A DNA stretch of 64,000 nt, from positions 202,647-266,646 of IMG/VR virus record IMGVR_UViG_3300037294_000266, one strand, 5' to 3'. The position numbers and the translations under genes were made by a program. The notes under the pieces were generated by a model. The model saw only the letters and a list, made by a program, of their open reading frames with translations. It did no database searches and was not told the DNA's origin. Below, piece after piece: positions 26,324 to 42,507 of this stretch. Each line of letters opens with the position of its first letter. Positions within the stretch are counted from its first letter, which is position 1.

Positions 26324-26460
26324 TTATCGCCTTCTCCCACGATAATGGTATGCCAGTTGTTTGATATCTGTATTAAACACAGATTTGTTTAAAAAGAAAT
26401 GACTCAGATTCTAGGGCCAGGTTCGGCACCAGAACCGTGGAGATCCCAACGGAGACTGCA

Positions 26461-28854
26461 ATGAGCACTGTAATTCCAGATTATCCTTTTGATCCGACGG
26501 GTGTCGCTGAAACGAACTTGGTTGTTGAAACCCAGGCTATCGAATCACGCGGCACGTTCGACCATTACCATGTGGTCCCACGGGTCGCACCTTTCTTTGC
26601 TGAGAGTGTGAAACTCCGTCTTTACCCAATCGGCGCGAACGTCAATAACCCAGCTGGTGGAGAAGCTCTTGAAGAGGGCATCCACTACAACTTCGGTTAC
26701 CACTTCGCTTATGCATCGCATACCATTGGTAAGCCTGTATATAGCAGCATCACCTTCTATGACCGCACGTTGCGTGGTCAGTTGCGTATGGAATACCAGA
26801 CGCTGGGTGGTGAGTGGGTTCTCGATGAGCAGAAGTACAACGAACTTCTACTTAACGTATCTCGCAATCCTCGTATCGCCACCTGGGAACAGATGGTCGA
26901 ACTACCTCGGGAGTTTCCCGTTGTAGATCACGATTTCAACATCGACGATTTTGTCGGCATGACTGAAGTTGTGGACGAATTGGGTGACATCGAGCAAGCG
27001 ATCCTTCAATCAAACGAAGGTGGGTTGAACGACCATATTGAAAGTACTAATAATCCGCACTCAGTTACTAAAGACCAGGTAGGTCTTGGTCTGGTCGATA
27101 ACTTCCCTTCGGCAGCGCCGGGTGAAGCGACTGCTGGTGTGGCGAACAACCGCTTCATGACACCGCTTCGTACTAAGCAGGCCATTGATGCACTCATTCT
27201 GCCTCAATTGACGGCTCACATGGGCAACACAGCTAACCCTCACCAGGTTACCAAAGCCCAGGTAGGTCTTGGCAGTGTTCAGAACTTTGCATTGGCCACT
27301 CAAGCAGAAGCTGAGGCTGGTTCAAGCAATGCTCGGTACAGCACACCACTTCGTGTCCGTGAGGCTATTGAAGCTATTGTCGGTGTGACGCTCAATGCTC
27401 ACATGGCCGATCGTTCCAATCCCCATCAGGTTACGCGTGTACACGTCGGTCTCGGTAATGTTGAGAACATCGGCATTGCAACCGATGTGGCAGCGATCCA
27501 AGGTGCAGATGACAGTGGTGTAATCACTCCTCGTCTATTGTCACTCGTGCTTGCTGAAACGATTGGTGGTGGTGTTTCTGAGCACATTCAGGATTTCACC
27601 AATCCTCACGGTGTGACGAAGACTCAGGTTGGGTTGGGTTCGGTTGATAACTTCCCTTCTGCGTCTGAAGCTGAAGCCCGCGATGCCACGCTCAGCAACC
27701 GCTTCATGACTCCGCTGGCGGTTCGTCAGGCGATCAACGAACTGGTCGGTGACAGTTCCAACGCACACGTGACGGACTTCGACAACCCTCATCAGGTTAC
27801 AGCAGAACAGGTGGGTACTTATCCATCGGTAACTATCGATCAGCTACTGAGTGACAAGCTTGGTAATGACGAAGCGGCTGCTGACACCGAATTGGTGTAC
27901 GGACTGGATCAGACTGGGTTAGAAGCATGGATCGGCACCATCAAGTCTGGCGACTCTAGTCGTTTAGATGGCATGACTCGACCAGAACTGACGGCTGATA
28001 TCTTGTCAGGCACTGCTGCTAACTCGATTCTCTTTGGTGGGAAGACATACAGCGAAATCGTGAGCGAGATTGGCGACACTGTAGACGGAGCTTCTATTCA
28101 GTTCCGTGTACCGGCGATGCTGGAATTGCTTGATGAGTTTGATGTCGAGACAACAGCGCCTGAACACTGGATCAAGCTGGGTGACTTTGGCGGAACAATC
28201 AACGAACAGCCGGCTGACGTGACGTTGATGATTGCTGGTGGTCGCGACGACTCCTTGGGCGATGATCAAATCCAACAGACGATTCTTGTTCAGATTGCTG
28301 CGACGTACGATTACACCGATGGCGGTCCTCCATTTGCAATGCAATTGAAGAGCGCTGTGATTAAAGAAATCACTCCAGGACCAAAGCCGATCGAGATCGG
28401 TTATCGTTCAATTGGATCGGACGGTACTGCTAAGGTAGAAGTTTACCTGAAAAGTATCGGTACTCGTAACTCCTTGTCTGTCACCGAGCTGTCGTTCAAG
28501 CGATTCAATGCAGCAGCGCAGGTCCAGTACACCGAGGTTGCTCAACTGACCACCGTAGAGCCTGTAGGTATTATCTACCCACCACGCTTGAAGGAAGGTA
28601 CGGCTGAAATCCTCGAACTGTTGGATCACGCCGCTGACACGACCAATCCACATCAGACTACAAAAGATCAAGTAGGTCTTGGCAACGTCGACGATTACGC
28701 AACGGCCTCCCCGGCTGAGGCTGTAACAGGCACTGCGACCAATCGCTTCATGACACCCGCCACCACTACCTCTAAGGTAGATGATGCCATCGGTGTCCTC
28801 TGTGACGAACTGATCCTCGTTATCGATGATGCTTTGGATAACTTGTTTGTCTGA
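26461..28854 (+). CDS. Tail fibre protein (phiKZ gp146-like)
   Basis: N-terminal YPFDPTG; about six NPHxVTKxQVGLGxVDN...FMTP repeats. Start moved to MSTVIP. Confidence 0.8.
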   Translation: MSTVIPDYPFDPTGVAETNLVVETQAIESRGTFDHYHVVPRVAPFFAESVKLRLYPIGANVNNPAGGEALEEGIHYNFGYHFAYASHTIGKPVYSSITFYDRTLRGQLRMEYQTLGGEWVLDEQKYNELLLNVSRNPRIATWEQMVELPREFPVVDHDFNIDDFVGMTEVVDELGDIEQAILQSNEGGLNDHIESTNNPHSVTKDQVGLGLVDNFPSAAPGEATAGVANNRFMTPLRTKQAIDALILPQLTAHMGNTANPHQVTKAQVGLGSVQNFALATQAEAEAGSSNARYSTPLRVREAIEAIVGVTLNAHMADRSNPHQVTRVHVGLGNVENIGIATDVAAIQGADDSGVITPRLLSLVLAETIGGGVSEHIQDFTNPHGVTKTQVGLGSVDNFPSASEAEARDATLSNRFMTPLAVRQAINELVGDSSNAHVTDFDNPHQVTAEQVGTYPSVTIDQLLSDKLGNDEAAADTELVYGLDQTGLEAWIGTIKSGDSSRLDGMTRPELTADILSGTAANSILFGGKTYSEIVSEIGDTVDGASIQFRVPAMLELLDEFDVETTAPEHWIKLGDFGGTINEQPADVTLMIAGGRDDSLGDDQIQQTILVQIAATYDYTDGGPPFAMQLKSAVIKEITPGPKPIEIGYRSIGSDGTAKVEVYLKSIGTRNSLSVTELSFKRFNAAAQVQYTEVAQLTTVEPVGIIYPPRLKEGTAEILELLDHAADTTNPHQTTKDQVGLGNVDDYATASPAEAVTGTATNRFMTPATTTSKVDDAIGVLCDELILVIDDALDNLFV

Positions 28855-28860
28855 CCATTA

Positions 28861-28888
28861 ACACGCTACCTCGAAAGGGGTAGCGTGT
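28861..28888 (+). terminator. Hairpin between tail-fibre genes
   Basis: acacgctacc-tcgaaagg-ggtagcgtgt. Confidence 0.55.
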
Positions 28889-28923
28889 GTTATTCGAACC
28901 CCTTTTCGTGATGGAGCCTCTTC

Positions 28924-30498
28924 ATGAGTGTACCACCCATTATCCAGTATCCGTTCGACAGTTCTGGCGAATCGCTAACGAACAAAGTCGAGAATGAGCG
29001 GAGAACGATTGCTCTTAATACCGAGCGAGCGTTCGTCCCTGAAGCGGGTCCGTTTTACACCAGTTCGTTTAAAATCTGGAACGATGAGACCAATGAAGAA
29101 CTTCGTCCTGTCGACGATTACATTCTGGCTCAGCCGTTTTCCCAGGCATCTATCCGGACAGCAAAAGATGTTCAGTGCGCAATCATTCTGAAAGTACAAG
29201 CGCCTATCAGCGTTCGTTATACGTATCAGGTGGTTGGCGGTGAGTATTCATGGAACCTTCAGGGTCTTGCTGATCTCATTGCTGAACTCGATCTCGATGA
29301 ACGTCCTGTTAAATGGGGCGCTGTCATTGGTCGTCCTAACGCCTATCCGCCAGCTCCGCACATCCATGACATTGGCGATTCGTTTGGCTGGGAATATGTG
29401 GTATGGCAGCTTGAGCGCATTACCAATGCTATCTTGGTTGGTGATGAAGCATCGCACGATGAACTGCGTCAGCAGATGCAGACTATCCGCGATCAGTTAC
29501 AGGCTAACATCGATGCATTGGAAGCCAAGGTTGATGAACACATCAACGACTTTGACAATCCGCACCAAACCACGAAGGCTCAAGTGGGCCTTGGCCTAGT
29601 TGATAACTTCCAGACAGCCTCTCCTGCTGAAGCTTTGGCTGGCGTTCTCGGCAATCGGTTCATGACGCCTTCGCTGTCGAATAGCCTGGCTACTCGCATT
29701 GCGACTGAAGAAGTGGCAGAGCACGAAGCCCGTAAAGATAATCCACATGAAGTCACCAAGGCTCAGACCGGGCTTGGCAATGTGGACAACTTCATTACTG
29801 CCACCCGTGCAGAGGCTGAAGCCGGTACTCTCAATACCCGGTTCATGACGCCGTTGCGGACGAAGGAGGCAATTGATTTCATCGCAGGTAACTTGCTTCA
29901 AGCGCACGTTAACGATACCAACAACCCACACATCACTACCAAGGCTCAAGTCGGGCTTGGTTTGGTTGATAACTTCCAGACAGCTACCAAAGCTGAATCG
30001 GAAGCAGGTATCCTCAACAACCGCTTCATGACTCCGTTGCGTACTAAAGAAGCGATCAACTTCATCGCTGGTAACTTGATCAATGCTCACTTGGCTGACT
30101 TTGGCAACCCTCACCAGGTAACGAAGACGCAGGTCGGCTTGAGTAACATCCCGAACGCCATCACTCGTTCCCGTACTGCTAATACCAGTGCTGAACTATT
30201 GGTAGCTGGTGCGATGTATGACCATATCCTGTCTGGCGATCACGATAGCCGTTATGTCAAGATCAACGTGGCTCAGAATACATCTTTGCGGATCGTAGGA
30301 TCAACATTGCAGGGTTATGTGTCAGGCGCTTGGCGTCAGATCTGGCCAGCGACATGGACTGGTTATGTAACGCCAGGTGCAGCAGATCCATACCCAGGTA
30401 ACGCTACCGAGATTACTCTGATGAACGCGGGCGGTATTCTGTTCGCTTCTGTCAACGGTACGTGGCGTCAGGTGTGGCCAGCTCTCTGGAACGACTAA
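28924..30498 (+). CDS. Tail fibre protein (phiKZ gp145-like)
   Basis: N-terminal YPFDSSG; four NPHxxTKxQxGL repeats; duplicated Trp-rich C-terminal motif. Confidence 0.8.
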   Translation: MSVPPIIQYPFDSSGESLTNKVENERRTIALNTERAFVPEAGPFYTSSFKIWNDETNEELRPVDDYILAQPFSQASIRTAKDVQCAIILKVQAPISVRYTYQVVGGEYSWNLQGLADLIAELDLDERPVKWGAVIGRPNAYPPAPHIHDIGDSFGWEYVVWQLERITNAILVGDEASHDELRQQMQTIRDQLQANIDALEAKVDEHINDFDNPHQTTKAQVGLGLVDNFQTASPAEALAGVLGNRFMTPSLSNSLATRIATEEVAEHEARKDNPHEVTKAQTGLGNVDNFITATRAEAEAGTLNTRFMTPLRTKEAIDFIAGNLLQAHVNDTNNPHITTKAQVGLGLVDNFQTATKAESEAGILNNRFMTPLRTKEAINFIAGNLINAHLADFGNPHQVTKTQVGLSNIPNAITRSRTANTSAELLVAGAMYDHILSGDHDSRYVKINVAQNTSLRIVGSTLQGYVSGAWRQIWPATWTGYVTPGAADPYPGNATEITLMNAGGILFASVNGTWRQVWPALWND

Positions 30499-30519
30499 TG
30501 TAAAATGAGGACTCGCAAT

Positions 30520-31032
30520 ATGTTTAAACACATTCAGGATTTTTCATTCGAAGGTGTTGACCTGTCAGCACTGAGGATAGATGATCTCCTGTCGAGTCCT
30601 CTTCCTTACGAACTCGGGCTGCCCAGGTATCTCGAGTACGGCGGTACACATTCGTTGTTTAACGCAGCTGAATACTTCGAACACAGTCAGACGAAACCCA
30701 TTAAAGTAGAGGGGATAGAGAGACTCAGTGAATTACTGTACTCGACATCCCTTCGACTAGGCAGACACTTTAACCACACAGGTCCTGTGTCTTGCCACAT
30801 GTTCATCTCGCCTGCACAATCACTTAGTTTCCCAATGCATTCTGATACAGACGACGTAATCATCTACATGGTCAGCGGCCGTAAGGTTTATGAAGGTGTG
30901 GATGGGTCGTTAGAAGTGCGCGCTGGGGACAGTATCTATATTCCGCGTGGTACTTTGCACTGCGCGGTTAACACTGACGATTCCGTCATGCTCAGCTTTG
31001 GGCTTGAACGCTACCTGGAAGATAAATTGTGA
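30520..31032 (+). CDS. Cupin/JmjC-like Fe(II) oxygenase
   Basis: SFPMHSDTDDVIIYMVSGRKVY...GDSIYIPRGTLHCAV gives an H-x-D...H triad. Confidence 0.8.
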   Translation: MFKHIQDFSFEGVDLSALRIDDLLSSPLPYELGLPRYLEYGGTHSLFNAAEYFEHSQTKPIKVEGIERLSELLYSTSLRLGRHFNHTGPVSCHMFISPAQSLSFPMHSDTDDVIIYMVSGRKVYEGVDGSLEVRAGDSIYIPRGTLHCAVNTDDSVMLSFGLERYLEDKL

Positions 31033-32072
31033 GTACTCACAAGACGATCTATGTCAAGACGACCGGGACATGCAACCTTAACTGCCAACACTGCTTCACG
31101 AATGGGAAGAACGGGGATAAAACTCAGTTTGTACCGGAGGTAGTAGCCGGATGGGTACATGATTACATGGCTCAGCATTCAGCCGATACCAGTTACCACA
31201 TGGAGTTCCATGGCGGTGAGCCGTTCATTGTTCCATTGGAGAAGCTGAAACAGTTTGCTGATCATTTTGTTGACATGGAGAACGTTTCCATGTGTGCAAA
31301 CAGCAATCTGACGTTTAAGCTGACCGATGAGTTAATCGCATTCATCAAAGACTATCTTGGTGGGTACGTCGGCACCAGTTGGGACTATTGGATACGTTGG
31401 GGAAATGCTAAGCAGTTTGATCTCTGGAAGAAGAATCTGGAGACCCTGCGTTCGCACGGAATCGGCATCGGTGTTAAAGCATCGGTGAGCCGTCAGCTCA
31501 TCGAGAAATCGCCAGACTGGTTCATTGATCAGATGGAAGCGCTGGCTATCGAAGAAGTGAGTCTTGAACGCCTCACCAATGATGGCAGTGCCGTAGATCA
31601 CTCTGGGATCTTTCCTGACAATGAGGCGCAGGATAACTGGTACCTTGCACTGTATCTCCGTTACAAAGAACGAAACCCTCGGGTAAAGATAAAGACCCTT
31701 GACATCATCGAACAGAAGCTCATCCAGAACATTGTCAAAGTAGATACCAATTGTCGAAACTGTGAGCAGAACCTTGTCACGATGAATTCAGATGGGTCTC
31801 TTTCAGGATGTCCTAACGCAGCAGCTAGTCTTCATCATGCTAGAATCGATGAAGGGGTTGAAACGTTCCTTTCTTCAGATGGGCGTATTGATCAGATTGC
31901 AAAGGAATTATCTTGGGGAGACACCTGCCTCAACTGTGACGTATTTGATCTTTGTGGCGGTGATTGTCATCGCTTACCGTGGCAAGAAGGTCGCTGCGGT
32001 GGGTTAAAGAACACGCTGCGACATCTTTCTGGCAGACAGCCACAGCAAAACAACCTGATTATAAAGGTGTGA
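31029..32072 (+). CDS. Radical SAM/SPASM protein 1
   Basis: CNLNCQHC, FHGGEPF; SPASM-like CRNC...GCPN...CLNCDVFDLCGGDC...C. Confidence 0.92.
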   Translation: MSTHKTIYVKTTGTCNLNCQHCFTNGKNGDKTQFVPEVVAGWVHDYMAQHSADTSYHMEFHGGEPFIVPLEKLKQFADHFVDMENVSMCANSNLTFKLTDELIAFIKDYLGGYVGTSWDYWIRWGNAKQFDLWKKNLETLRSHGIGIGVKASVSRQLIEKSPDWFIDQMEALAIEEVSLERLTNDGSAVDHSGIFPDNEAQDNWYLALYLRYKERNPRVKIKTLDIIEQKLIQNIVKVDTNCRNCEQNLVTMNSDGSLSGCPNAAASLHHARIDEGVETFLSSDGRIDQIAKELSWGDTCLNCDVFDLCGGDCHRLPWQEGRCGGLKNTLRHLSGRQPQQNNLIIKV

Positions 32073-32073: not shown

Positions 32074-32607
32074 ATGACTGAAATAATTACACGTAACCGA
32101 ATGGCCGTGAATGCCAACTCGTTGATTACCAATCGATGTAAAGCGGGCATTTCCTGGGGGACGAACAACTACCCAGCGAACTCCGATCCTGCTTGGTTTG
32201 CGGGCACTAACGCAGGCCCTGACGCTGCATTTGGCGGCTATCAGTTTTCAGCCGGAGTTGCTAACGCACAGCAGGCGATCGACGTACTTAAATATGTCTC
32301 TAATCTATTTGCCAGTGTCCGAACCACTCGAATTGTAATTTACATGTCTCACTTCTCGCTGGGGCAGACTGTTGTTTCCGATAACACTGCAGTTGCTTGG
32401 ATCAATGCGCCTGCGGCTTTCAGTAATAACGTGGGAATGTGGTTTGCATCGGGATATGACATGGATCTTAACGCGTTTAATAACTCGTGTGAGGCTATCT
32501 ACAGTGCATATCTAGCAACGTGCCGTTATCAGACCGCTACGTTCACCCGAACCATTTGCCACACTAGCTGTCATAGCAGCTGTCATAGCAGCCGAGGCCG
32601 CCGATGA
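32074..32607 (+). CDS. 177-aa protein with C-terminal (CHxS)3 repeat; candidate radical SAM substrate
   Basis: Ends TICHTSCHSSCHSSRGRR. Asn/Ala/Gly/aromatic-rich body resembles a virion protein. Function is inference. Confidence 0.7.
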   Translation: MTEIITRNRMAVNANSLITNRCKAGISWGTNNYPANSDPAWFAGTNAGPDAAFGGYQFSAGVANAQQAIDVLKYVSNLFASVRTTRIVIYMSHFSLGQTVVSDNTAVAWINAPAAFSNNVGMWFASGYDMDLNAFNNSCEAIYSAYLATCRYQTATFTRTICHTSCHSSCHSSRGRR

Positions 32608-32657
32608 CATGTCATGTAAGTGCCATCAAACGGTCTAGAGAAGCAACTGGAGAACCC

Positions 32658-33440
32658 ATGGAACAGACTACTGAAGAAACCAAACCAGGCGGGGCGGTCA
32701 TCGACGGGCCGGTGATTGTCATTGAAACCACAGCCAATATTCCAATGGACTTACTTAAACGTAAGTTCAAAGAGAATATTGAGTTTGTCATCGATGTGGA
32801 CAACAGTCGTCTTAAAGGCGACATGCTGCTCACCTATCTGTCAAACCTCAAGCTTAACTGCAAGCTAAAGTTTGGTAGTCTCGAATCGTCTCTCGAACTC
32901 CTGTCGTCGTATTTAAAGATGTCTACGGTCATGTCGATTCCAGAATTGGAAGACCTGGCCATGAACATCATGCTGGCAGCGTATGGTAAAGATCATTACT
33001 GTCAATTCGATCCGACTGAGTTCATTCGTGACAACTCAGACATGATCGACGTGTGGCTCCGGCGGATGTGTGCACTCCCTTTGTTTGCATTACACTGTCA
33101 TCCAACGACCAAGGATTTTGTTTCTCAATTCCCAGTCGATGAAGACCATGAGCTGCACGGTATCAACTACGTGCAACTGATCAAGCACGAACTGTTCCCA
33201 GAATTCATCAATGACTTCAATCAAGAAGACATGTCGTACAACAGGTTATTGTTCAACGAATACTGTTTTGCAGGGCTGAACCTGTTTAACTATTTCGCGA
33301 TCCCCAATAACCCGTTGTTTGTGGGACTGATGGTACTCGACAAACCAGAACACCTCGAAGTGCTCATGGCTGCTGCTCATACGACTTACGTGACTGCTGA
33401 AACGATCATGAAGGAGCTCGAACATGTACCATCTGTGTAA
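32658..33440 (+). CDS. Hypothetical protein of the radical SAM cluster
   Basis: 260 aa from ATG 32658 (RBS ggag); no recognised motif. Confidence 0.65.
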   Translation: MEQTTEETKPGGAVIDGPVIVIETTANIPMDLLKRKFKENIEFVIDVDNSRLKGDMLLTYLSNLKLNCKLKFGSLESSLELLSSYLKMSTVMSIPELEDLAMNIMLAAYGKDHYCQFDPTEFIRDNSDMIDVWLRRMCALPLFALHCHPTTKDFVSQFPVDEDHELHGINYVQLIKHELFPEFINDFNQEDMSYNRLLFNEYCFAGLNLFNYFAIPNNPLFVGLMVLDKPEHLEVLMAAAHTTYVTAETIMKELEHVPSV

Positions 33441-34470
33441 ATCGATTTACGTCGATAGCGAACACCGCATCGACCGTAATAAAGATGTGATCACAATCTC
33501 TCCAAAGATCGGGTTTGAACACATCGCTGAAGAGAAAGGTGTGCAGATCGGTTATGCTACAAGTCTGGATGAGTTGTCTCCTGAAGCGTTAGAGGCGATG
33601 CTCAACAAAGGTCTTGCTGCCGATGACCGTGTGACCGTCTATTGTGACGGTAAGACGTACTTGCGTCTTTACACCATGTTGATAAAGGCTGTATTGCCGA
33701 ACTTAACACTGGATCTGTTCCGATGGATCATGCTGTGTAAGAAGGCTACTTTCAATACGACTATCGTTGCAGGCGGCGAGCCTAACGTGGATGTGTTGGC
33801 CAGTATCCAGATCAATAACAAGGTCTGTCACGAGCTCTTCATGGAAGCCAGTACTCTGCAACCAGTGATCGATGCACTGGTCAATGAGAACCCAGACTTC
33901 CTTTCGCTGGAATGGCGCTTGATTCGTCTGCGTACTGAAGGTCGTGTCGGTAAGATCCCAGGTGTACTCAACAACATCCTGCGTCGCATTGCTCTGAGCA
34001 ATGCTCATGATGCCATGGACGTCTGGGGTCGTCATCTGACCCGCGAGAAGAACTGGGACATCGCTGGCGCTGATCTCGATACGCTTCTGAACGCACCCAC
34101 TGTGTTCGAAGGGTGTTTGAACATGCCGCACTTGGCGAGTCAACAACTCCTGCGTCCTGGTCTGTATGATTTCTCACCGACCAAGCCCTGGATCATCGGC
34201 ATGCTGCGTGAGGCCGTAGGTCTGATGGAAGTCCTTGAGGACGAGTCATCTGCTAAACGCGCTGCTCACATTCTTGAGCTGTTTAGTTCACCTGTCAATT
34301 TACGTGAGTCTGATGCATGCTTGCAGCGTGTTGTTGATATGTTTGCAGGTGAGATGCGCATTGCACTGGCTTTCAAGGATACTGGCAAATACGACGAGAA
34401 CTTGATTCGGTTCATTCTCGAATCAGATATCGAAGTGCTCAAAACTTCTCTTGAAGGGGCTGAATGGTAA
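33424..34470 (+). CDS. Hypothetical protein of the radical SAM cluster
   Basis: 348 aa, overlapping both neighbours. Confidence 0.65.
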   Translation: MYHLCKSIYVDSEHRIDRNKDVITISPKIGFEHIAEEKGVQIGYATSLDELSPEALEAMLNKGLAADDRVTVYCDGKTYLRLYTMLIKAVLPNLTLDLFRWIMLCKKATFNTTIVAGGEPNVDVLASIQINNKVCHELFMEASTLQPVIDALVNENPDFLSLEWRLIRLRTEGRVGKIPGVLNNILRRIALSNAHDAMDVWGRHLTREKNWDIAGADLDTLLNAPTVFEGCLNMPHLASQQLLRPGLYDFSPTKPWIIGMLREAVGLMEVLEDESSAKRAAHILELFSSPVNLRESDACLQRVVDMFAGEMRIALAFKDTGKYDENLIRFILESDIEVLKTSLEGAEW

Positions 34471-35462
34471 TGGACTTAATTCCCGTATTGAACATACTCG
34501 AGCAAAAGAAAGGTAAGTTGAAAGAAGCTCACCTCATTCTGTTCGAGTACTGTAATTTACGGTGTTCGTTCTGCCACCAGGACCACGAATCCAGAATCGG
34601 CATCAATACGATCCAGCAGAAAGTAGACACACTCATTGCCAACTCAAACCCACGTGATGCCTACGTGTTGAATTTGACTGGCGGTGAGTTATTTCTTGAT
34701 GAGTTCAGCGATGGGCTCTTTGAGGAATACTACGAAGCCGGTAAACGTCTCTTAGAACACTTCGACGATGCGTTGCTGGTGCTGGGTACCAATCTGATCT
34801 ATCACAATGTAGCGCGGGTCATCAAGCTGGTCAATCGCTTAAAGCGATATGGTCGTGTGCAACTTGCCACGTCTTACGATCCAGCAGGACGATTCAACGC
34901 AGAACAACGGACACTGTTCTTCAAGAACCTTATCCATGTTCGTGACCTTGTACGCACGGTCAATGTGGTTATCACCAAGCAGAACATCCAGTCGTTTCTG
35001 GATGGACATGAAGGTGCCGAGTTCAAGTGGATGTGCGAACACTTTGACGTGTACTTCGATCATTACATCCCAAGTCAGATGTACGAGTATATCCAGCCGG
35101 ATGAAGACCTAATCAGTCAGCTCTACATGCACCTGAACAAACACTACCCAGACTCGTATCCGATCAAGGACTGGAAGAACAATGTGGAGAATACCACCAC
35201 TTGTCGATCCACTAAGATCATCAATAAGGATAATGTCGTGACCACCTGTTGGTCAGAAGCTGGGAAAGACTCTATCTTGGACGAGCAAGAAGGTTTGCTA
35301 GCCAAGGATGAGGCCGAGTTGCGGTTCCTTGAGAAATACGACTGCTTTGCCTGTGAGTTCTACTCGCGATGCGGGATGCGATGTTTCTTGCATCATTCGT
35401 TTGTGGATGATGGACTTGACAATGTCTGTCAGATAAAAACGATGTTCAGAGCCATCCTGTAA
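34464..35462 (+). CDS. Radical SAM protein 2
   Basis: CNLRCSFC, LTGGELF, ATSYDPAGRF; C-terminal CRS...TTC...CFACEFYSRCGMRC...C. Confidence 0.9.
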   Translation: MVMDLIPVLNILEQKKGKLKEAHLILFEYCNLRCSFCHQDHESRIGINTIQQKVDTLIANSNPRDAYVLNLTGGELFLDEFSDGLFEEYYEAGKRLLEHFDDALLVLGTNLIYHNVARVIKLVNRLKRYGRVQLATSYDPAGRFNAEQRTLFFKNLIHVRDLVRTVNVVITKQNIQSFLDGHEGAEFKWMCEHFDVYFDHYIPSQMYEYIQPDEDLISQLYMHLNKHYPDSYPIKDWKNNVENTTTCRSTKIINKDNVVTTCWSEAGKDSILDEQEGLLAKDEAELRFLEKYDCFACEFYSRCGMRCFLHHSFVDDGLDNVCQIKTMFRAIL

Positions 35463-35507: not shown

Positions 35508-36566
35508 CTAGGTCACTGCAGCGCACAGATCTTTTACACCCGATGGTGTCAGGTAACGTTCGGTTCCGAAGAGGTCATTGATGATGTTAGAGATGAACTG
35601 TTTGTGTAGGTTAGCGACTGTATTTGCTGGAACGCCTTTTATGCCGAATTGATTACAGTATTCGAACACCCCCCATTTCTTATCTTTGGTTACGAATAGA
35701 TCCAAAGAACTGAGAGGACCTATCACGTCCCGCGCCAATGCGCTTAAATCGTGAATTTGTTTAGAGGACAGCACCGACTCGATGGAAACAATGTCTTCAC
35801 CAAGGATACTGTTTGTGTTCGATCCTGATGCTTGGGGAAACCCATCGGCATTGTAGACATTACGTTTCTGGACGTAAGCGATCTCGCTCTGCGCGCCAGT
35901 GATTATACGGTACTCAGATTCAATATTGTCAACAAACGATTGAATCGAATAACCTTGGGTTTTTAGACCAGACAGGCCTTCATCGACGTGATGTTCGCCG
36001 CGTGTAGAATAAGCCATATCCGGATCGTACTTATTCAGCTCTTCAAACAGTTCTTTGCTGGTAGACATGCCCTTGATGTACTTATCAAGAGCTTCAATCA
36101 TTACAGCAAATGGAATCTTATCAGTATCGACAAGAAACTGTCCTATTCCACGAGCTCCGTCGTTAGGCTTGATGACTACCTTACCACTCGGGTTGACAAG
36201 ACTACTGAGTCCCAGTGCTTGGGAGTGCACCCATGATTTAATTTTGACGAAGTCGTCATCGTTAAACTGTAACCGCCCAGCAGTGCGCTTGACATAGTTG
36301 TTGATCCGCATTGCCTGTTCGGTTTTACTATACCGGCGATTTACGAACACCATATGTGGTGGCAGTATGCGCTCAGCAGCGATCTCATTGATCTTTAAAG
36401 TGCCGTCACTGATCATGAAATCAAAGTTGAAATGCTCCTCTCCATCAATGACGCTAAGTTGAGGGTCGTTGTGGAAGAATATTTGTTTATTGTTAATGAC
36501 AATGCCTTGATGCAGCACCCAGAAATTGTTCATGAACTTACTAACAACGATATATACACGTTCCAT
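35508..36566 (-). CDS. ATP-grasp (RimK-like) ligase
   Basis: VVIKPNDGARGIG, IQSFV..EYRII, SLDLF...GVFEYCNQFG. Start moved to MERVYI (RBS aggag). Confidence 0.75.
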   Translation of the reverse strand: MERVYIVVSKFMNNFWVLHQGIVINNKQIFFHNDPQLSVIDGEEHFNFDFMISDGTLKINEIAAERILPPHMVFVNRRYSKTEQAMRINNYVKRTAGRLQFNDDDFVKIKSWVHSQALGLSSLVNPSGKVVIKPNDGARGIGQFLVDTDKIPFAVMIEALDKYIKGMSTSKELFEELNKYDPDMAYSTRGEHHVDEGLSGLKTQGYSIQSFVDNIESEYRIITGAQSEIAYVQKRNVYNADGFPQASGSNTNSILGEDIVSIESVLSSKQIHDLSALARDVIGPLSSLDLFVTKDKKWGVFEYCNQFGIKGVPANTVANLHKQFISNIINDLFGTERYLTPSGVKDLCAAVT

Positions 36567-36657
36567 CGGAGACTCCTGATGTTTAGACCATATAAGACCA
36601 CAGGTAAGTAAAACATAACGATACAATCCCTATGTAATCTTTAATGCTGAGGTCGAC

Positions 36658-37081: not shown

Positions 37082-38170
37082 GTGGATGTTATAGTTAAAC
37101 CGACCGTTGCTTGTAATTTTAAGTGTACATTCTGTTCGAGTACTCATTTATCAGAAAACCCAACAGATATCGTAGAGCTCTCTACGCTTAAGCAGTTTAT
37201 CCAGCGCTTCCCAGAAACCAATACCGTGATCGTCAATGGTGGAGACCCGCTCATGATGCCTCCTGAGTATTACTGGGAGATGATTAAGATGCTGGATGAA
37301 CTTGATAGTCATGCGAGCATCAGTTTCACCAGTAACCTCTGGCCTTTCTACAAGAAGCCTGAGATATGGGAAGAGTTATTCAAACATGATCGCCTAGGTA
37401 TCACGACTTCTTTCCAATACGGTGACAAGCGCCTCAAAGGCGACAAGTCAGTCTTCACAGAAGAAGACTTCAGGAATGTCAGTGACATGTTCCTTGAACG
37501 CATTGGTTACCGTCCTAGCTTCATTGCCGTCATTGACAAGGACAACGAGCACACTGTCTTGGACACGGTTCGTCTGGCTAAGGAAATGGGTGTTGAAGCC
37601 AAGATCAACCACGTTGTTGCTTCAGGACCCGAAGTGGATAATCGTGGCATCATCATGGGCAGTCAGAATAACTTCTTCACTCAGGCGGATATCTACCGTC
37701 ATTATGTCCAGATCTACGATGCCGGTCTGATGGAGTGGGAATACAACACCAAACAGATGGCTAAGAAGCTTAAGGGATTGGCCACTACCTGTCCGTTAGC
37801 ACGGAACTGCGACAGTGGTATTCGAGCATTGCAGCCTGGCGGTGGTTATTATTCATGTGGGTCGTTTGGTGATGATGGCGAACATCCCATTGACTTCGAA
37901 GCAGAGATGGCCGGCGAGTTCTTCACCCCACTGCAATACGAAGCCGACTTAGACTCGATGAAAGAGTCGTGCTACACATGCCCTATGTTCAGTATTTGTA
38001 ATGGCTGTCGTAAAACCATTGCAGACACCAAGCGAATGGGACTTGTAGAACATCATTGCAAAACCATGAAAGAGATTGCTCCACGGATCATCGATATCAA
38101 CGGACTGACCGGTAAGGTATTTCCAACGCCATACGTTGACGAATCAGTGCAGCTCATTGCTAAGGCATAA
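37082..38170 (+). CDS. Radical SAM/SPASM protein 3
   Basis: CNFKCTFC, VNGGDPL; CPLARNC...YSCGSF...CYTCPMFSICNGC...HC. Confidence 0.92.
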   Translation: MDVIVKPTVACNFKCTFCSSTHLSENPTDIVELSTLKQFIQRFPETNTVIVNGGDPLMMPPEYYWEMIKMLDELDSHASISFTSNLWPFYKKPEIWEELFKHDRLGITTSFQYGDKRLKGDKSVFTEEDFRNVSDMFLERIGYRPSFIAVIDKDNEHTVLDTVRLAKEMGVEAKINHVVASGPEVDNRGIIMGSQNNFFTQADIYRHYVQIYDAGLMEWEYNTKQMAKKLKGLATTCPLARNCDSGIRALQPGGGYYSCGSFGDDGEHPIDFEAEMAGEFFTPLQYEADLDSMKESCYTCPMFSICNGCRKTIADTKRMGLVEHHCKTMKEIAPRIIDINGLTGKVFPTPYVDESVQLIAKA

Positions 38171-38173: not shown

Positions 38174-39100
38174 ATGACAAAGCCTAAAATAAATATCAGT
38201 ATCAACCCGTGGTATTTCTGTAATTTTAAATGTGACTTCTGCTACTTGACTCCTGAGCAATTAGGGGATCGAAAGCGTCTTGACCTCGAGACACTCGAAC
38301 AACGGCTCGATGAACTCCTGCAACATTACGTTATCGGACACATCGATCTATATGGTGGTGAAGTATTACTACTGCCTGAAGAATACATCAATGCTATCCG
38401 TGACATGTTACACGTCCGAGGTATTGATGACTTGGTTCTGGTTACTAACCTGTCTCATCTCCACCCAGTCGTTCACGAGAAGGATTGGGAAATATCGGTC
38501 TCGTATGACTTTGATGCTCGTGAGAAACATGAACATGTGTTACAGAACATGCTTCTCATGACACAACCTTTCAGTATCTTGTCTCTGGCAGGGCGCCAGT
38601 TTCTCGATAAGGTTACTCCAGACATCTACGTCGACACGATGAATATGTTTGGTAATCTGAAAGGTTGTGAGATCAAACCTTACAGTAGTAACCAAGCCAA
38701 CGACCAGCCTGTGACGTACCGAGAATACGAAGAGTTTGTCTGGGCAGTGATTGATCATCCGGCTCGTAACTTCTACTTTGAGAACGCCACTCAGGTTGAA
38801 GAAGCATTTGAAGGCACTCGTAATTCATTCAGCGATGACCACATCTACATCACACCTGAAGGTAAGTTTGCAGTACTGGAGTTCGATGACAATGATCATG
38901 AATTCTTTATGCCACTGGAATCGATTGCAGAGTACCAACAGTGGTGTGTAATCGAGAAGAGCCGTGTTAATGTCAATCCGATCTGTTCGGCATGTCCTTA
39001 CAACGGATCTTGTCTCTCTGAACACCTTCGTAATGTAACGTCCCTCGATAATTCCTGTAATGGGTTCCGAGGACTCATTGATAAATGGGGTGCATCGTGA
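38174..39100 (+). CDS. Radical SAM protein 4
   Basis: CNFKCDFC, LYGGEVL; CSACPYNGSCLSEH...SC. Confidence 0.9.
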   Translation: MTKPKINISINPWYFCNFKCDFCYLTPEQLGDRKRLDLETLEQRLDELLQHYVIGHIDLYGGEVLLLPEEYINAIRDMLHVRGIDDLVLVTNLSHLHPVVHEKDWEISVSYDFDAREKHEHVLQNMLLMTQPFSILSLAGRQFLDKVTPDIYVDTMNMFGNLKGCEIKPYSSNQANDQPVTYREYEEFVWAVIDHPARNFYFENATQVEEAFEGTRNSFSDDHIYITPEGKFAVLEFDDNDHEFFMPLESIAEYQQWCVIEKSRVNVNPICSACPYNGSCLSEHLRNVTSLDNSCNGFRGLIDKWGAS

Positions 39101-40149
39101 AAGCTCAACATCTTGAAGTAGAACACAGGCAGCGCCTGGAGATCACTCTCGACATCTTTCGAGGGTGTGGTCATAGCTGCTCAGGCTGCATGATCAATAC
39201 GTCGCTGGGTGGGGATGTCAACGACATTCCTGAACTCCATGCACTGATCAGTGAAATGGTTGACGTTGGGTATGTGGCGTTTGATCTCGGTGTAGGTCCT
39301 ACTGATTACATGTCTGCAGACAACACCGCCGAGGTCATGGACCATCCGGTCTTTCAAGAGATGGCGCAGAAATTCCATCAGGTTACGTTCAACGCAGCGT
39401 TCCTTGAGAAAGACATGGAGAAGTATAGGTCGATGTGCGAAGACATTGACCTGGCACTCCCTGGTAAATCTATACGCTTCTTAATTCCGGCAGCGCCTCC
39501 ATTTTTCAAGACACACAAGTTTGGCGACATGATTGAATCCAAACTTGAGTTCGTGAAGGATAATCTACATAGCGCTTACCTGAATGAAGCTGGCTTTGTG
39601 GTTAACTGCACGGCAGACACTGTGGGTGATGACTTTGAGGCCATGATGAATAATGGCTTTGATATTGAATTCCCTGTTGATAAGGATGATATCTTGAATA
39701 TCCCTTACGGTCGAGCGCCTGTAAAGGATCTGATGACGGCACAGCACATCAAGCGGATGTCTCATCGCATCACTCAGTTCTATTCAACACTGAATGGTAC
39801 AGATGAGCGTCGTCGCAATCCTGATCTCTGCTACCACACCGGTACCATGGTCAATCTCCTGTACACCGGCGGTAAGCTTTACTGGGTGCCTTTCCTTAAA
39901 GACGACTGCGCGTTCCTTGAAGATGCTTTCTCTGTGTCGAAGCCCTGGTCTATGGATAATCTCCTAAAGACTCGTCAGGCGGCTCTAGAGAGCGCTCTAG
40001 ACTACCTTAAGGACACGCCGTGCATGACCTGTCCTTATCTGAGCAGTTGTTCAGAGAAAGGTATCATTAACATCATGGAACACATGCAGATCCGTGATTG
40101 TCTAGTTGGGTTAGAACATGTTAAATCAACCGCAGAGTCCAGCGTTTAA
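39097..40149 (+). CDS. Divergent radical SAM-like protein 5
   Basis: CGHSCSGC; GGE replaced by GPTD; CMTCPYLSSC...DC. GTG start overlaps the upstream TGA. Confidence 0.75.
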   Translation: MKAQHLEVEHRQRLEITLDIFRGCGHSCSGCMINTSLGGDVNDIPELHALISEMVDVGYVAFDLGVGPTDYMSADNTAEVMDHPVFQEMAQKFHQVTFNAAFLEKDMEKYRSMCEDIDLALPGKSIRFLIPAAPPFFKTHKFGDMIESKLEFVKDNLHSAYLNEAGFVVNCTADTVGDDFEAMMNNGFDIEFPVDKDDILNIPYGRAPVKDLMTAQHIKRMSHRITQFYSTLNGTDERRRNPDLCYHTGTMVNLLYTGGKLYWVPFLKDDCAFLEDAFSVSKPWSMDNLLKTRQAALESALDYLKDTPCMTCPYLSSCSEKGIINIMEHMQIRDCLVGLEHVKSTAESSV

Positions 40150-41098
40150 TCTGACCCTTGAGATTCTACAGGGGTGTAAGTACAACTGCGTAGGCTGTAT
40201 GGTCGATAAAGACTACGAGCCTCTTATTCCATTTGACCAGGACACGGATAAGATCCTTGAAATGGTCGATGCGATGAAAGCTGAAGGGTATCGGACTCGA
40301 GAGTTTACAATCGGGCCAGTGGATGTCATCAGCTCGAAGACAGGGGATTCGATATTCGATCATCGCTTGATTAAGGGGCTGGCTGAGCGGTTTGAATCTG
40401 TCGTCATTCCGTTAGCACTGATGAAAGGGAAGTCGTTTACACTGGCCACTCCTTTCCAGCTAAAGAGTACTGACAACCCTAAACACGTCGATCTAATAAA
40501 GCGTCGTGTGATGTTCATCCAAGCGTCATTGCCTGACGTTAAATTTGAGCTACTGTACATTACCGTTAACATGATTGGCGATGCAGTAGATGCATTTGAT
40601 GTTGCATTAAACCGAAGACTCCATGATATTGATTTTGGTGTCAGACGACTCATTGAGTTTGTATTCCCTCACCCTAGAAAGGGGTTGGATAATTTACTCA
40701 TGCAGAACTTGTTTAAGCGCAACTTCGGACATTTCTGTGACGTCATTAAACAGTGTAAGAACACTGATCTAAATCGTCATCTCATTAAACCAGCTGATGA
40801 TAGCTACGAAACAACCTATCGTGATGGCAGACTGTATTACACACCGACACTGATCGAGAAGTTTCCTATATTCGATCCGATGTTTGAAATAACGTCTCCA
40901 TGGACTCTCGAGAAGATAGAGCTGTTCAAGATGGATCTCTATCTAGACAGTCTGGTTAAATATTCAGTGAGCGGACCGTGCAGTAAGTGTTGTAATTTAA
41001 GTAAGTGTGCTGAGGGCGATGTTCACTCCATCATGACTCATTTGAATGACTCGACTTGTCTGGTATCTCTTTATAACGACTGGAGTGTGATAACGTGA
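40118..41098 (+). CDS. Divergent radical SAM-like protein 6 (paralog of protein 5)
   Basis: CKYNCVGC; GPVD in place of GGE; CSKCCNLSKC...TC. Confidence 0.75.
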   Translation: MLNQPQSPAFNLTLEILQGCKYNCVGCMVDKDYEPLIPFDQDTDKILEMVDAMKAEGYRTREFTIGPVDVISSKTGDSIFDHRLIKGLAERFESVVIPLALMKGKSFTLATPFQLKSTDNPKHVDLIKRRVMFIQASLPDVKFELLYITVNMIGDAVDAFDVALNRRLHDIDFGVRRLIEFVFPHPRKGLDNLLMQNLFKRNFGHFCDVIKQCKNTDLNRHLIKPADDSYETTYRDGRLYYTPTLIEKFPIFDPMFEITSPWTLEKIELFKMDLYLDSLVKYSVSGPCSKCCNLSKCAEGDVHSIMTHLNDSTCLVSLYNDWSVIT

Positions 41099-41532
41099 GT
41101 AAGGAAGAACAGCTTACTTTTATTCAGTTAGAACAGATGCCTTTTCCAGATTGGCTGATAGACGCTGTCCTTTGTGAACCTAACAAAGCGTTCATTGAGA
41201 CAGCGTCTATCAACGACTACGTCAACAGCATCATACTGCCAATTGTTGCTGATGAACTCAACTGGCCAGACAATCTGCAAGTGACAGCAAACCATGTCCA
41301 TTGTAGCAGTGACGGACTCGAGCCACACGACCATCTCCCTCACGAATACACTTCAGTACTCTATCTCATTGATGCCGAAGGTGATCTGATTGTTCATGAC
41401 GATGGCGAACACCGTGTCACGCCAGCAGAAGGTCGGTTTGTTCTGATGGACGCTCGTCTTAAACACAGTGTTGAACCATCCAACTGCATGCGTATTTCTC
41501 TGGTGACCAACTATGCAACCACCTGCCTATAA
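41095..41532 (+). CDS. 2OG-Fe(II) oxygenase-like protein
   Basis: PHDHLPHEYTSVLYL...GRFVLMDARLKHSV...MRISLVTN. Confidence 0.75.
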   Translation: MSKEEQLTFIQLEQMPFPDWLIDAVLCEPNKAFIETASINDYVNSIILPIVADELNWPDNLQVTANHVHCSSDGLEPHDHLPHEYTSVLYLIDAEGDLIVHDDGEHRVTPAEGRFVLMDARLKHSVEPSNCMRISLVTNYATTCL

Positions 41533-41947
41533 AGACTATCAACTGCTCTACGATGAATATGTCCAAGAGCATGCTGACGATTTTGCTAACATGGAAATCG
41601 TTGAGGATCCTGAACTTGTGGAAAACGCGCTCCATTACTTCAAGGAAGCGTCTTTCCCGCTCATCTATCCGGCTAAGAGTTATGCGGTGGCTATCATTTA
41701 CGCCACTAAGATTCATGAACTCTACGATATCCCAGTCAAGACGACCTTGAATGATCCCGATCTATTCTTAGGACATGACCGGTACTTCGTTCCGTATGAG
41801 CTAGATCCCCACACCTACGACGCTATCTTGGCTCGCTTAGAGACTATTCCTAATTGGATGGAATCTGGCTGGGCTCCGCAGTCGGTGAAGTACTGTCTTT
41901 TAGAATGTACTGAAGACGGTGTCAACTCGGTATTGAGCGGAGAGTGA
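41513..41947 (+). CDS. Hypothetical protein of the cluster
   Basis: 144 aa, overlapping both neighbours. Confidence 0.6.
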   Translation: MQPPAYKDYQLLYDEYVQEHADDFANMEIVEDPELVENALHYFKEASFPLIYPAKSYAVAIIYATKIHELYDIPVKTTLNDPDLFLGHDRYFVPYELDPHTYDAILARLETIPNWMESGWAPQSVKYCLLECTEDGVNSVLSGE

Positions 41948-42507
41948 CCATGAACTATCTAGAGCCGTGGAAGACTGAGATCGGGCATTTCAACGTGGCT
42001 GATCAGTTTGACATGACGGCCTTTGGTGAAGAGATATTTACGTTATTTGCCATGACCAATGGAGAGGACGAAAGTCAACGTAAGATTGACCCTTCGACGT
42101 TTCCTGTCCTTCTGAAGATGCGTGATGAAACAATAACGCCAGCGGTCATTGAATATACGAAACGTTGTTTCAACTACGACATGGATAAGTTCTATGTTGA
42201 AAGTAATGGTAAGTGGATTGCAGAAGGTGAGGGACTGTATCCACATTGGCATCCTGGCTCAGTCATCTCGGTCATCTGCTATCCAGTAGATTCTGCAAAT
42301 GGTTTGAACATGTTCGATCCTAAGGGGAACGCCATTCGGGGTTATCCTAAAGAGATGCGATGGGGACATTTTGCCAACTTGAACATCTCGCCTAAAGCAG
42401 GTGACATCTTCATATTCCCCAGTTACCTCCAACACAGCGTAAGTCATGTGACAGAAGAGGTGCGGTTGTCTCTGCTCCACGAGTATTATGTCACCCACAA
42501 TTTATAG
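41944..42507 (+). CDS. 2OG-Fe(II) oxygenase (TIGR02466-like)
   Basis: PHWHPGSVISVICYP...FDPKG...PKAGDIFIFPSYLQHSV...RLS. Confidence 0.8.
   Translation: MTMNYLEPWKTEIGHFNVADQFDMTAFGEEIFTLFAMTNGEDESQRKIDPSTFPVLLKMRDETITPAVIEYTKRCFNYDMDKFYVESNGKWIAEGEGLYPHWHPGSVISVICYPVDSANGLNMFDPKGNAIRGYPKEMRWGHFANLNISPKAGDIFIFPSYLQHSVSHVTEEVRLSLLHEYYVTHNL

Follow-up and report, generated by a model that had tools for sequence, protein, structure and literature searches.

Radical-SAM (rSAM) enzymes that mature whole proteins are few, and the closest described system to the locus analysed here is the HXS antiphage system, in which HxsA is matured by the rSAMs HxsB and HxsC with a small partner protein, HxsD (PMC13128918). 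HxsA is a whole protein rather than a short peptide, carries His-x-Ser-type repeats rich in basic residues, and bears a modification (+8 Da) that maps to an S-H-R-S-S motif. Sactipeptides and ranthipeptides such as SCIFF, PapA/freyrasin and streptosactin show repeated Cys at short, regular spacing next to an rSAM/SPASM enzyme, and streptosactin contains four-residue Cys-to-(i+3) thioether rings. In triceptides (YhhB/XyeB, FxsB, GrrM, AmcB) three-residue cyclophanes form on aromatic-X-X motifs. The anaerobic sulfatase-maturating enzyme (anSME) and QhpD/QhpC of quinohemoprotein amine dehydrogenase are SPASM rSAMs that act on proteins rather than peptides. Away from rSAM chemistry, trimeric phage fibres may end in metal-binding tips, as for the His-x-His iron sites of the T4 gp37 needle and the Zn of gp12, or may carry a Peptidase_S74 intramolecular chaperone.

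The window examined here is a 64,000-nucleotide stretch of IMG/VR record IMGVR_UViG_3300037294_000266 (positions 202,647 to 266,646). Within it, ORF 32074-32607 (+) encodes a 177-aa protein that ends ...FTRTICHTSCHSSCHSSRGRR*, read as TI-CHTS-CHSS-CHSS-RGRR and here termed the CHxS protein. Unlike HxsA, whose repeats have period 3 and lack Cys, the repeat here has period 4 with a Cys-His dyad and an RxRR C-terminus. HxsA has a peptidoglycan-binding domain and is exported, whereas the CHxS protein has neither feature and is represented in virions by a homologue. HXS is a host defence with two rSAMs, while this cassette has four to six plus oxygenases and is carried by phages and predators. The HXS models are not reached by its enzymes: 27.9 bits against 370 for HxsB, 16.9-24.7 against 267.9 for HxsC, and no HxsD hit, including for p278 and p348.

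Comparison with the other systems is similarly partial. Sactipeptide and ranthipeptide precursors are short with cleavable leaders and their maturases usually carry an RRE, whereas the substrate candidate here is a folded protein and no RRE is recognised. The adjacent rSAM has SPASM-like Cys but scores 24.7 against 425 and 50.8 against 340 bits with the models of that class (SCIFF TIGR03974, PapB NF047865, CteB-like), missing the cut-offs by about 300 bits. H-x-[S/N/A] occurs three times in the tail and H-x-S fits the triceptide aromatic-X-X motif, although it is embedded in a period-4 unit, its third position varies among S, N and A, and the invariant Cys has no known role in triceptide chemistry. 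The triceptide maturases are among the best, though weak, matches of the adjacent rSAM, with YhhB, FxsB, GrrM and AmcB scoring 46, 41.8, 26.8 and 53.6 bits against cut-offs of 445, 370, 310 and 425. anSME has the same compact architecture as the adjacent rSAM (rSAM1), without an RRE (PDB 4k36), and matches all 27 rSAM1 orthologues tested, but weakly (50.5 against 349.45 bits, TIGR03942). The last repeat, C-H-x-S-R, resembles the sulfatase C-x-P-x-R motif at positions 1, 4 and 5, yet lacks its Pro/Ala, and no sulfatase or dehydrogenase domain is present. For the CXXX-repeat peptide system (TIGR04115), only 5 of 27 orthologues match, with a best E-value of 1.5e-9.

The CHxS tail and its family

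The observation made in the preliminary description, a 177-aa protein with a repeated Cys-His C-terminus following an rSAM/SPASM gene, is confirmed. The ORF begins at ATG and encodes a 19.2 kDa product. The stop codon of the upstream rSAM gene abuts this ATG, and the ORF's own stop overlaps the ATG of the next gene (ATGA). In the window protein the tryptic tail peptide is TICHTSCHSSCHSSR. A degenerate DNA pattern for three CH dyads at period 4 occurs once in the window and in none of 100 dinucleotide-preserving shuffles. Tandem Repeats Finder reports a 12-nt unit, 2.2 copies at 100% match, at 32566-32592. However, synonymous codons are used freely across the family and Ser uses both codon families, so selection acts on the peptide and the DNA repeat, which had been remarked upon at first, is incidental.

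The tail defines a large uncharacterised family of 126 clusters at 90% identity and 764 at 50% identity, with lengths of 113-453 aa (median 191). Of 261 retrieved members, 240 end CHxx-CHxx-CHxx-RxRR. C162, H163, C166, H167, C170, R174, R176 and R177 are invariant, while the bodies are only about 30% identical, and the tail persists on bodies too divergent for a body-only HMM to detect. One correction is required to the (Cys-His-x-Ser)3 motif first proposed: Ser at the fourth position is preferred rather than fixed (S 227/240, S/N 234/240 and S/A/N 240/240 in the three repeats), and the motif is better written phi-(CHxx)3-RxRR-COOH.

Pfam and NCBIfam searches returned nothing for the CHxS protein, and PHROGs matched only the tail (phrog_35144, E 9e-4). 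The AF2 model of the body is confident (pLDDT 89.9), with a floppy tail of low pLDDT that is predicted to be exposed. Fold searches with the two confident AF2 models, CHxS and p278, found no PDB match with E <= 0.001. In the viral library, where only the CHxS model was searched, matches were to family members and to three larger proteins of one uncultured myovirus. Profile searches of PDB sequences with the CHxS family, p278, p348 and p144 found nothing meaningful. The earlier label of a virion-like domain therefore had no basis in the sequence.

Gene order and linkage to radical-SAM genes

The CHxS gene lies within a cassette of roughly ten genes rather than beside one rSAM as a simple enzyme and substrate pair. 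The features in the window are as follows, with counts referring to the 86 loci compared.

26437..30498 (+), two tail-fibre-like virion proteins (805 and 524 aa; phrog_2163 and phrog_13857, E down to 1e-136), directly upstream of the cassette and giving its structural context
30505..31032 (+), cupin, 175 aa, invariant H112-x-D114...H152 and K127, predicted Fe(II) oxygenase with weak JmjC_2 similarity; 77 of 86 loci
31029..32072 (+), rSAM1, 347 aa, CX3CX2C at residues 15-22 plus 8 invariant C-terminal Cys (SPASM-like), no N-terminal RRE; directly upstream of the CHxS gene in 82 of 86 loci
32074..32607 (+), CHxS protein, 177 aa, predicted globular alpha/beta body (residues 1-161) plus the (CHxx)3-RxRR tail
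32557..32604 (+), tail coding segment (CHTS-CHSS-CHSS-RGRR), containing the incidental 12-nt repeat
32604..33440 (+), p278 (phrog_20767), conserved partner of unknown function; 85 of 86 loci
33424..34470 (+), p348, conserved, fast-evolving partner of unknown function; 77 of 86 loci
34464..35462 (+), rSAM2, 332 aa, CX3CX2C plus a C-terminal Cys cluster; 81 of 86 loci
35508..36626 (-), 372-aa ORF on the opposite strand between rSAM2 and rSAM3, no family hit, found only in the window's close relatives (5 of 86 loci) and so probably not part of the core cassette
37082..38170 (+), rSAM3, 362 aa, SPASM-type; 77 of 86 loci
38174..39100 (+), rSAM4, 308 aa; 71 of 86 loci
39085..40149 (+), rSAM5-like, 354 aa (CGHSCSGC motif), lineage-restricted addition, annotated as radical SAM in phage DT01; 31 of 86 loci
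40118..41098 (+), rSAM6-like, 326 aa (CKYNCVGC motif), lineage-restricted addition; 25 of 86 loci
41095..41532 (+), 2OG-Fe(II) oxygenase, 145 aa
41513..41947 (+), p144, conserved small Tyr-rich protein of unknown function; 65 of 86 loci
41944..43071 (+), two 2OG-Fe(II) oxygenases (PF13759), 187 and 183 aa

The order cupin-rSAM1-CHxS-p278-p348-rSAM2-rSAM3-rSAM4-p144-oxygenase is kept across the 86 loci, with the individual frequencies given above. Every one of 85 viral loci and 35 of 37 usable cellular loci has at least one rSAM gene within 6 kb, usually several. The occurrence of homologues widely without rSAM neighbours, set beforehand as a condition that would count against a functional link, was therefore not observed. 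Short paralogues in two of the loci (L084 and L085) nevertheless keep the tail without cupin or rSAM1 nearby. A near-identity DNA search of the phage collection with the cassette returned nothing, tblastn of a distant member (P0058) against cultured phages found nothing, and only 15 records, representing 11 distinct cultured phages, carry the cassette.

The system is not confined to phages, as the cellular hits lie mostly in Bdellovibrionota chromosomes among housekeeping genes. A prophage explanation was rejected for two Mb-scale contigs, where the cassette lies among SMC, LolA, LspA and a DinG-like helicase. Eight of the 47 genome hits had no tail ORF and look like chance or low-complexity matches.

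All rSAMs of the cassette carry CX3CX2C. The nearest families to rSAM1 are all peptide or protein modifiers (anSME, PapB, YhhB, DynA, CteB). However, anSME, PapB, YhhB, CbpB and DynA match about equally and all lie far below their cut-offs (about 50 bits against 340-450), so the chemistry cannot be read from homology. Literature searches for the cassette, for phage SPASM systems, for a CXXX-repeat system and for the motif string, the last of which mostly returned German words, found no description of it.

Given that the cassette encodes four to six enzymes each needing one or more Fe-S clusters, with eight further invariant Cys in rSAM1, it is conceivable that the CHxS protein is an accessory rather than a substrate, for example an Fe-S cluster carrier or dedicated electron donor whose three Cys and three His ligate a [2Fe-2S] or [4Fe-4S] cluster. 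We consider this very unlikely. A homologue is present in virions while the rSAMs are absent, some variants are fused to fibre-type domains, tandem duplicated copies sit directly after a 3135-aa fibre gene, and there is no similarity to known ferredoxin, flavodoxin or scaffold folds.

Virion association and a model for the tail

The Agrobacterium phage Atu_ph07 homologue, gp170 (31.9 kDa), is a published virion protein detected with 8 peptides and 35% coverage, while the neighbouring enzymes are absent from that proteome. gp170 is most abundant in band 1, the top gel band, whereas other proteins of about 30 kDa peak in bands 7-8 and fibres of 61-80 kDa peak in band 2. This position fits a trimer of 95.7 kDa, although the loading buffer as listed contains no reductant and the high-mass species could be disulfide-linked. 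One variant (P0245, locus L054) carries Peptidase_S74, a hallmark of trimeric fibres, directly after the repeats, and the upstream genes encode fibre or baseplate proteins in the window and in loci L004, L006 and L085. The CHxS family thus has a virion component encoded with fibre and baseplate genes, whereas support for trimeric assembly is indirect.

These data bear on whether the protein is a classical RiPP or cofactor precursor with an oversized leader, in which the tail would be tailored and then cut off to give a small crosslinked peptide, metallophore or redox cofactor, leaving the 160-aa body as a recognition domain only. A C-terminal core next to an rSAM/SPASM gene is the standard RiPP layout, many tailoring enzymes are present, a multi-core variant with several tandem CH-repeat units exists (P0147), and the type of N-domain seems to go with the type of adjacent rSAM. 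Against this, no protease or transporter was recognised in the cassette, the body is present in virions at structural-protein coverage and is predicted as a confident globular fold rather than a leader, and the S74 fusion places the repeats inside a fibre-type protein. This reading is therefore considered unlikely.

Our results support, tentatively, a model in which the CHxS protein is a structural protein associated with the fibre and baseplate region, probably trimeric, whose flexible tail is the dedicated substrate of the surrounding rSAM/oxygenase cassette. The analysis itself establishes that the tail is the most conserved part of a very large family, that the gene is physically linked to SPASM-type rSAM genes in phages and in Bdellovibrionota, that a homologue is carried in virions and runs far above its monomer mass, and that one variant is fused to a trimer-specific fibre chaperone. 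That the tail is modified at all, and by which chemistry, is inferred, with no mass-spectrometric or biochemical evidence for it in any member. In this view rSAM1, which is translationally coupled, lacks an RRE and shares the overall architecture of anSME, and perhaps other rSAMs, would abstract hydrogen in the tail and install crosslinks. Candidates are a bond from Cys-S to a carbon three residues on (a sactionine- or ranthionine-type four-residue ring), a His-to-(i+2) cyclophane, or conversion of Cys to formylglycine. The cupin and 2OG oxygenases would hydroxylate His, Arg or another residue, p278 may act as a presenting adaptor, and the body would not be removed. The result would be a rigid, protease-resistant, cationic tip, possibly stapled between chains and metal-binding, used in attaching to or breaching Gram-negative envelopes. 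HxsA provides a precedent for an rSAM-matured whole protein with His-x-Ser repeats. Four to six rSAMs nevertheless seem too many for 16 residues, and other substrates may exist.

A serious rival, although on balance we think it unlikely, is that the tail is an unmodified metal-binding element. In a trimer, the three Cys-His dyads per chain would coordinate Zn, Fe or another metal along the axis and stabilise a fibre tip, with the enzymes acting on other virion proteins, p348, p144 or a small molecule. Only Cys, His and the terminal Arg residues are invariant, and invariant Cys and His with variable spacers is the classical pattern of metal ligands. The S74 fusion implies a trimeric fibre-like C-terminus and recalls trimeric tips that hold metal ions, the gene sits next to fibre and baseplate genes, and the non-reducing gel allows a disulfide or metal explanation for band 1. 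However, this model gives no reason for the near-absolute linkage to 2-6 rSAM genes across phages and bacteria, nor for the translational coupling to rSAM1. Ser at repeat position 4 is kept through both codon families and is not a typical ligand, and no other obvious substrate motif is conserved in the cassette. Known metal-binding fibre tips use His-x-His or His clusters, need no dedicated enzymes and are not known to be linked to rSAM genes.

The interpretation first offered, a RiPP-style modification of a folded phage protein, is thus partly supported: the functional link to rSAM enzymes and the nature of the protein as a folded, retained virion component rather than a short leader plus core are upheld, while modification of the tail remains an inference and the phage-only, single-enzyme setting requires revision.

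rSAM/SPASM enzymes are known mainly as makers of small peptide natural products, whereas here a folded structural protein, in a family of hundreds of clusters, appears to be the client of four to six such enzymes plus oxygenases. These rSAM families are far from all curated models and may hold new radical chemistry on Cys-His motifs, and the genes are currently annotated as DNA repair or metabolism in published phage genomes (PMC8541153, PMC11898562). Post-translational chemistry on virions is almost unexplored, and an enzyme-installed crosslink or cofactor at a fibre tip would be a new principle in host recognition or particle stability. In a bolder form of the model, which we regard as unlikely on present evidence, rSAM enzymes staple the Cys-His tails of a trimeric fibre-tip protein within or between chains to create a covalently crosslinked, rigid, cationic warhead that giant phages and predatory Bdellovibrionota would both use to grip or breach Gram-negative envelopes, which would be the first radical-enzyme-crosslinked virion protein and an attack module shared between viruses and bacterial predators. 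The presence of the same cassette in giant phages and in the chromosomes of predatory Bdellovibrionota suggests a common tool for attacking Gram-negative cells.

The CHxS protein and its conserved tail

The open reading frame at 32074-32607 (+) begins with ATG and encodes a protein of 177 aa ending TI-CHTS-CHSS-CHSS-RGRR, which confirms the observation made in the preliminary description. Within its coding sequence a 12-nt unit is repeated 2.2 times at 32566-32592. The degenerate DNA pattern for three Cys-His dyads at period 4 occurs once in the window and never in 100 shuffles. The upstream gene ends directly before the ATG and the downstream gene starts inside the stop codon (ATGA), so the three genes are translationally coupled. 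The window derives from a phiKZ-related jumbo phage and is 100% identical to IMG/VR contig UViG_3300037294_000266 (266,646 bp), for which the nearest cultured relative is Pseudomonas phage pPa_SNUABM_DT01. UvsX, RNase H and SbcC are encoded around the locus together with the following features.

26-6064 (+): 2012-aa protein combining a fibre-type family (phrog_3201) with a transglycosylase region, probably the cell-puncturing or tail-associated lysin of this phiKZ-like phage
26437-30498 (+): two tail-fibre-like proteins (26437-28854 and 28924-30498) carrying many copies of an NPHxxTKxQVGLGxVxNF-type repeat, with homologues conserved upstream of the cassette only in the DT01/RSL2-like lineage
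31029-32072: rSAM1, the upstream gene
32074-32607 (+): CHxS protein, with its body encoded at 32074-32556
32146-32175: residues 25-34 of the CHxS protein, the motif GISWGTNxYP
32604-33440 (+): p278, the downstream gene
35508-36626 (-): 372-aa open reading frame interrupting the cassette between rSAM2 and rSAM3

From the cupin onwards the genes run cupin, rSAM1, CHxS protein, p278, p348, rSAM2, the reverse-strand insert, rSAM3 to rSAM6, and three 2OG oxygenases interleaved with p144. All six rSAMs carry CX3CX2C and C-terminal Cys clusters. The insert has no family hit and is present in only 5 of the 86 loci compared below, so it looks like a recent insertion in this lineage.

A word-indexed search for the CHxS protein gave 126 clusters at 90% identity, while an exhaustive profile search gave 764 representatives at 50% identity with E <= 0.001, of which 424 have E <= 1e-10. 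Of 261 sequences retrieved, 240 end CHxx-CHxx-CHxx-RxRR and 259 have at least two CHxx units. In alignments whose bodies average 30–37% column identity, the invariant columns are C162, H163, C166, H167, C170, R174, R176 and R177, with only I26 and P34 invariant in the body. Position 4 of the three units is S (227/240), S/N and S/A/N respectively, and the residue before the first Cys is V or I. Across 68 distinct tail DNAs, Cys uses TGT and TGC about equally, His uses CAT and CAC, Ser uses both AGY and TCN, and Arg uses both AGR and CGN. Selection therefore acts on the peptide, and the DNA repeat in the window is a by-product. A body-only HMM fails to detect about half of the tail-bearing proteins from cellular genomes, and the tail thus outlives recognisable similarity of the body. 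Ligand-like conservation of this kind fits what we consider the main alternative to enzymatic modification, albeit a less likely one, in which the tail is an unmodified metal-binding element of a trimeric tip and the enzymes serve another substrate.

Rare variants have two or four units, end in a Gly/Pro-rich stretch instead of RxRR, or carry several tandem repeat blocks. One multi-block tail (sequence P0147; also at 3907-4266 of L115, a Dysosmobacter segnis contig from a Firmicute isolate assembly) has several tandem CH-repeat units separated by SNV(P)V, reminiscent of multi-core RiPP precursors. The only other strongly conserved motif, GISWGTNxYP, is the sole such stretch of the body (I26 and P34 invariant; W28, G29 and N31 at >=90%). 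As W-G-T is itself an aromatic-X-X motif, this could be a second modification site or a docking site.

AlphaFold2 with 58 homologues gives a confident predicted alpha/beta domain (mean pLDDT 89.9, pTM 0.84), whereas the last 16 residues score only 54–67, which indicates an exposed, flexible tail. A Foldseek search found no PDB match with E <= 0.001, and in the viral library it found only family members and three larger proteins of one uncultured myovirus. The partner p278 also gives a confident model (pLDDT 86.9) with no PDB match, and both p278 and the CHxS body may therefore be new folds.

The radical-SAM cassette and its carriers

We compared 80 viral loci, three cultured-phage loci and three metagenome loci, with open reading frames assigned by iterated profile search. 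The order cupin-rSAM1-CHxS-p278-p348-rSAM2-rSAM3-rSAM4-p144-oxygenase recurs throughout.

Loci containing each cassette gene, of 86 compared; many loci are cut by contig ends
CHxS: 86
p278: 85
rSAM1: 82
rSAM2: 81
cupin: 77
p348: 77
rSAM3: 77
rSAM4: 71
p144: 65

All 85 viral loci with a canonical tail have an rSAM within 6 kb, and 81 have two or more. A wide occurrence of homologues without rSAM neighbours, which the preliminary description had named in advance as evidence against its reading of the tail, was therefore not what we found. Its interpretation of the tail as an rSAM substrate is partly supported, as the linkage holds while the modification itself is inferred. The unmodified metal-binding alternative does not explain this linkage. 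The cassette always follows large structural genes, which are fibre-like proteins in the window's lineage, a 1769-aa DUF4815 protein next to baseplate wedge genes in locus L004, a 1375-aa protein in locus L006 and a 3135-aa fibre in locus L085. In loci L084/L085 and three Rhodobacteraceae-bin contigs, two short paralogues (124–140 aa) keep the tail but lack the cupin and rSAM1, and sit instead beside rSAM5-like genes. These tandem paralogues (L085:9851-10608; also L104, L114 and L131) have an unrelated body but the same tail, and in L085 lie directly after the 3135-aa fibre gene. This hints that the body type goes with the type of adjacent rSAM.

The system is not restricted to phages. A scan of one genome per prokaryotic species for the tail's DNA pattern gave 47 stretches, against roughly 0.1 expected from our own estimate of the pattern's frequency. 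Of these, 39 hold a canonical tail open reading frame, 27 of which are in assemblies of the predatory Bdellovibrionota (among loci L091-L132, L134 and L135). In 35 of the 37 loci with usable flank, rSAM genes lie within 6 kb. On two Bacteriovoracaceae contigs of 2.8 and 2.4 Mb (L134:10001-10684 and L135:10001-10699), the cassette lies among SMC, LolA, lipoprotein signal peptidase, response regulators and a DinG-like helicase, and one copy sits next to a 2355-aa Ig/RCC1-repeat protein. This is a chromosomal context, not a prophage. The other hits are on small or roughly 100–250-kb contigs in MAGs and may be mis-binned phages.

Virion evidence and fused variants

In the published ESI-MS/MS virion proteome of Agrobacterium phage Atu_ph07 (PMC6102473, Table S5), gp170, the homologue ending DF-CHSS-CHAS-CHNS-RSRR, is identified with 8 unique peptides and 35% coverage, and its computed mass of 31.89 kDa matches the table. 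The neighbouring cupin, rSAMs and p278 homologue are not listed. The presence of the body in virions, together with the lack of a recognised protease or exporter in the cassette, disfavours a cleaved RiPP or cofactor precursor, which we regard as improbable. Virion presence also counts against the still less likely possibility that the protein is an Fe-S or electron-carrier accessory of the enzymes, as do the fibre-type fusions described below. gp170 is found in bands 1–9 and is most abundant in band 1, the top of the gel, whereas other proteins of about 30 kDa peak in bands 7–8 and fibre proteins of 61–80 kDa peak in band 2. A trimer would be 95.7 kDa. The sample was heated at 95 °C in SDS, but the buffer as listed has no reductant. 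The species is therefore heat- and SDS-stable, yet it could still be disulfide-linked.

Independently, one variant (sequence P0245, the same protein as that at 9962-10909 of locus L054, where it lies next to an rSAM1 orthologue) has four CH units followed by a short linker and a Peptidase_S74 intramolecular chaperone domain (E 1.5e-11). This domain drives trimerisation of phage fibres and spikes and then cleaves itself off. The fusion is also compatible with the unmodified metal-binding tip. Another variant is fused to a Gly_rich_2 domain.

The enzymes and the possible fate of the tail

rSAM1 orthologues keep CX3CX2C plus eight further Cys, and 24 of 27 match the SPASM domain model. The enzyme starts directly with the radical-SAM core and has no N-terminal RRE, and no Pfam family, so no PqqD-type RRE domain, was detected in p278, p348 or p144. 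The best curated matches of rSAM1 are all peptide or protein modifiers, namely anSME (27/27 orthologues), PapB (27/27), YhhB (26), CbpB, DynA, FxsB, HxsB and DarE, but each scores about 50 bits against cut-offs of 340–650. In the PDB the nearest are 8vpo, anSME 4k36 and CteB 5wgg. rSAM1 is thus a new family inside the SPASM maturase clade whose chemistry cannot be read off from these matches. The cupin keeps an H-x-D...H triad and a Lys, and matches Cupin_2 and, more weakly, JmjC_2 and the histidyl hydroxylase MINA53. A protein hydroxylase acting on His or Arg is an attractive but unproven reading.

The closest described system is the HXS antiphage system, in which HxsA, a protein with five His-x-Ser repeats, is matured by two rSAMs and a small partner, and a +8 Da change maps to S-H-R-S-S (PMC13128918). 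The present system differs in repeat period and the invariant Cys, in the RxRR terminus, in domain content, in the number and families of enzymes, and in its carriers, which are phages and predators rather than a host defence. None of the Hxs models is satisfied. The system also fails tested membership features of sacti-/ranthipeptides, of triceptides, of anSME/sulfatase and of the CXXX-repeat system. Published genome papers list these genes only as rSAM, cupin or oxygenase accessory genes, or ascribe them to DNA repair (PMC11898562, PMC5468394, PMC8541153). The six rSAM genes of phage DT01 have been ascribed to DNA repair or metabolic boosting, and in related Ralstonia phages rSAM genes carry product names such as MoaA or Fe-S oxidoreductase (PMC8541153, PMC5468394). 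Here all six are SPASM/twitch-type genes inside the cassette, so those labels are probably misleading. Our literature searches found no paper on the cassette or the motif, and we therefore consider the system to be undescribed, as a putative member of the rSAM-matured proteins.

While the conservation of the tail, its linkage to rSAM genes and the occurrence of a homologue in virions follow directly from the data, trimeric assembly, modification of the tail and the chemistry involved are inferred. Candidate chemistries are Cys-to-(i+3) thioethers, with four-residue rings as occur in streptosactin, His-x-Ser cyclophanes, or formylglycine at the last C-H-x-S-R unit, which resembles the sulfatase motif at three of five positions. 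The number of enzymes remains unexplained. The most economical model, which we favour only tentatively, is that the CHxS protein is a fibre-associated, probably trimeric structural protein whose body stays attached and whose exposed tail is the client of the cassette, with the enzymes installing crosslinks and hydroxylations. In this view, inter-chain links would explain the gel behaviour of the Atu_ph07 homologue.
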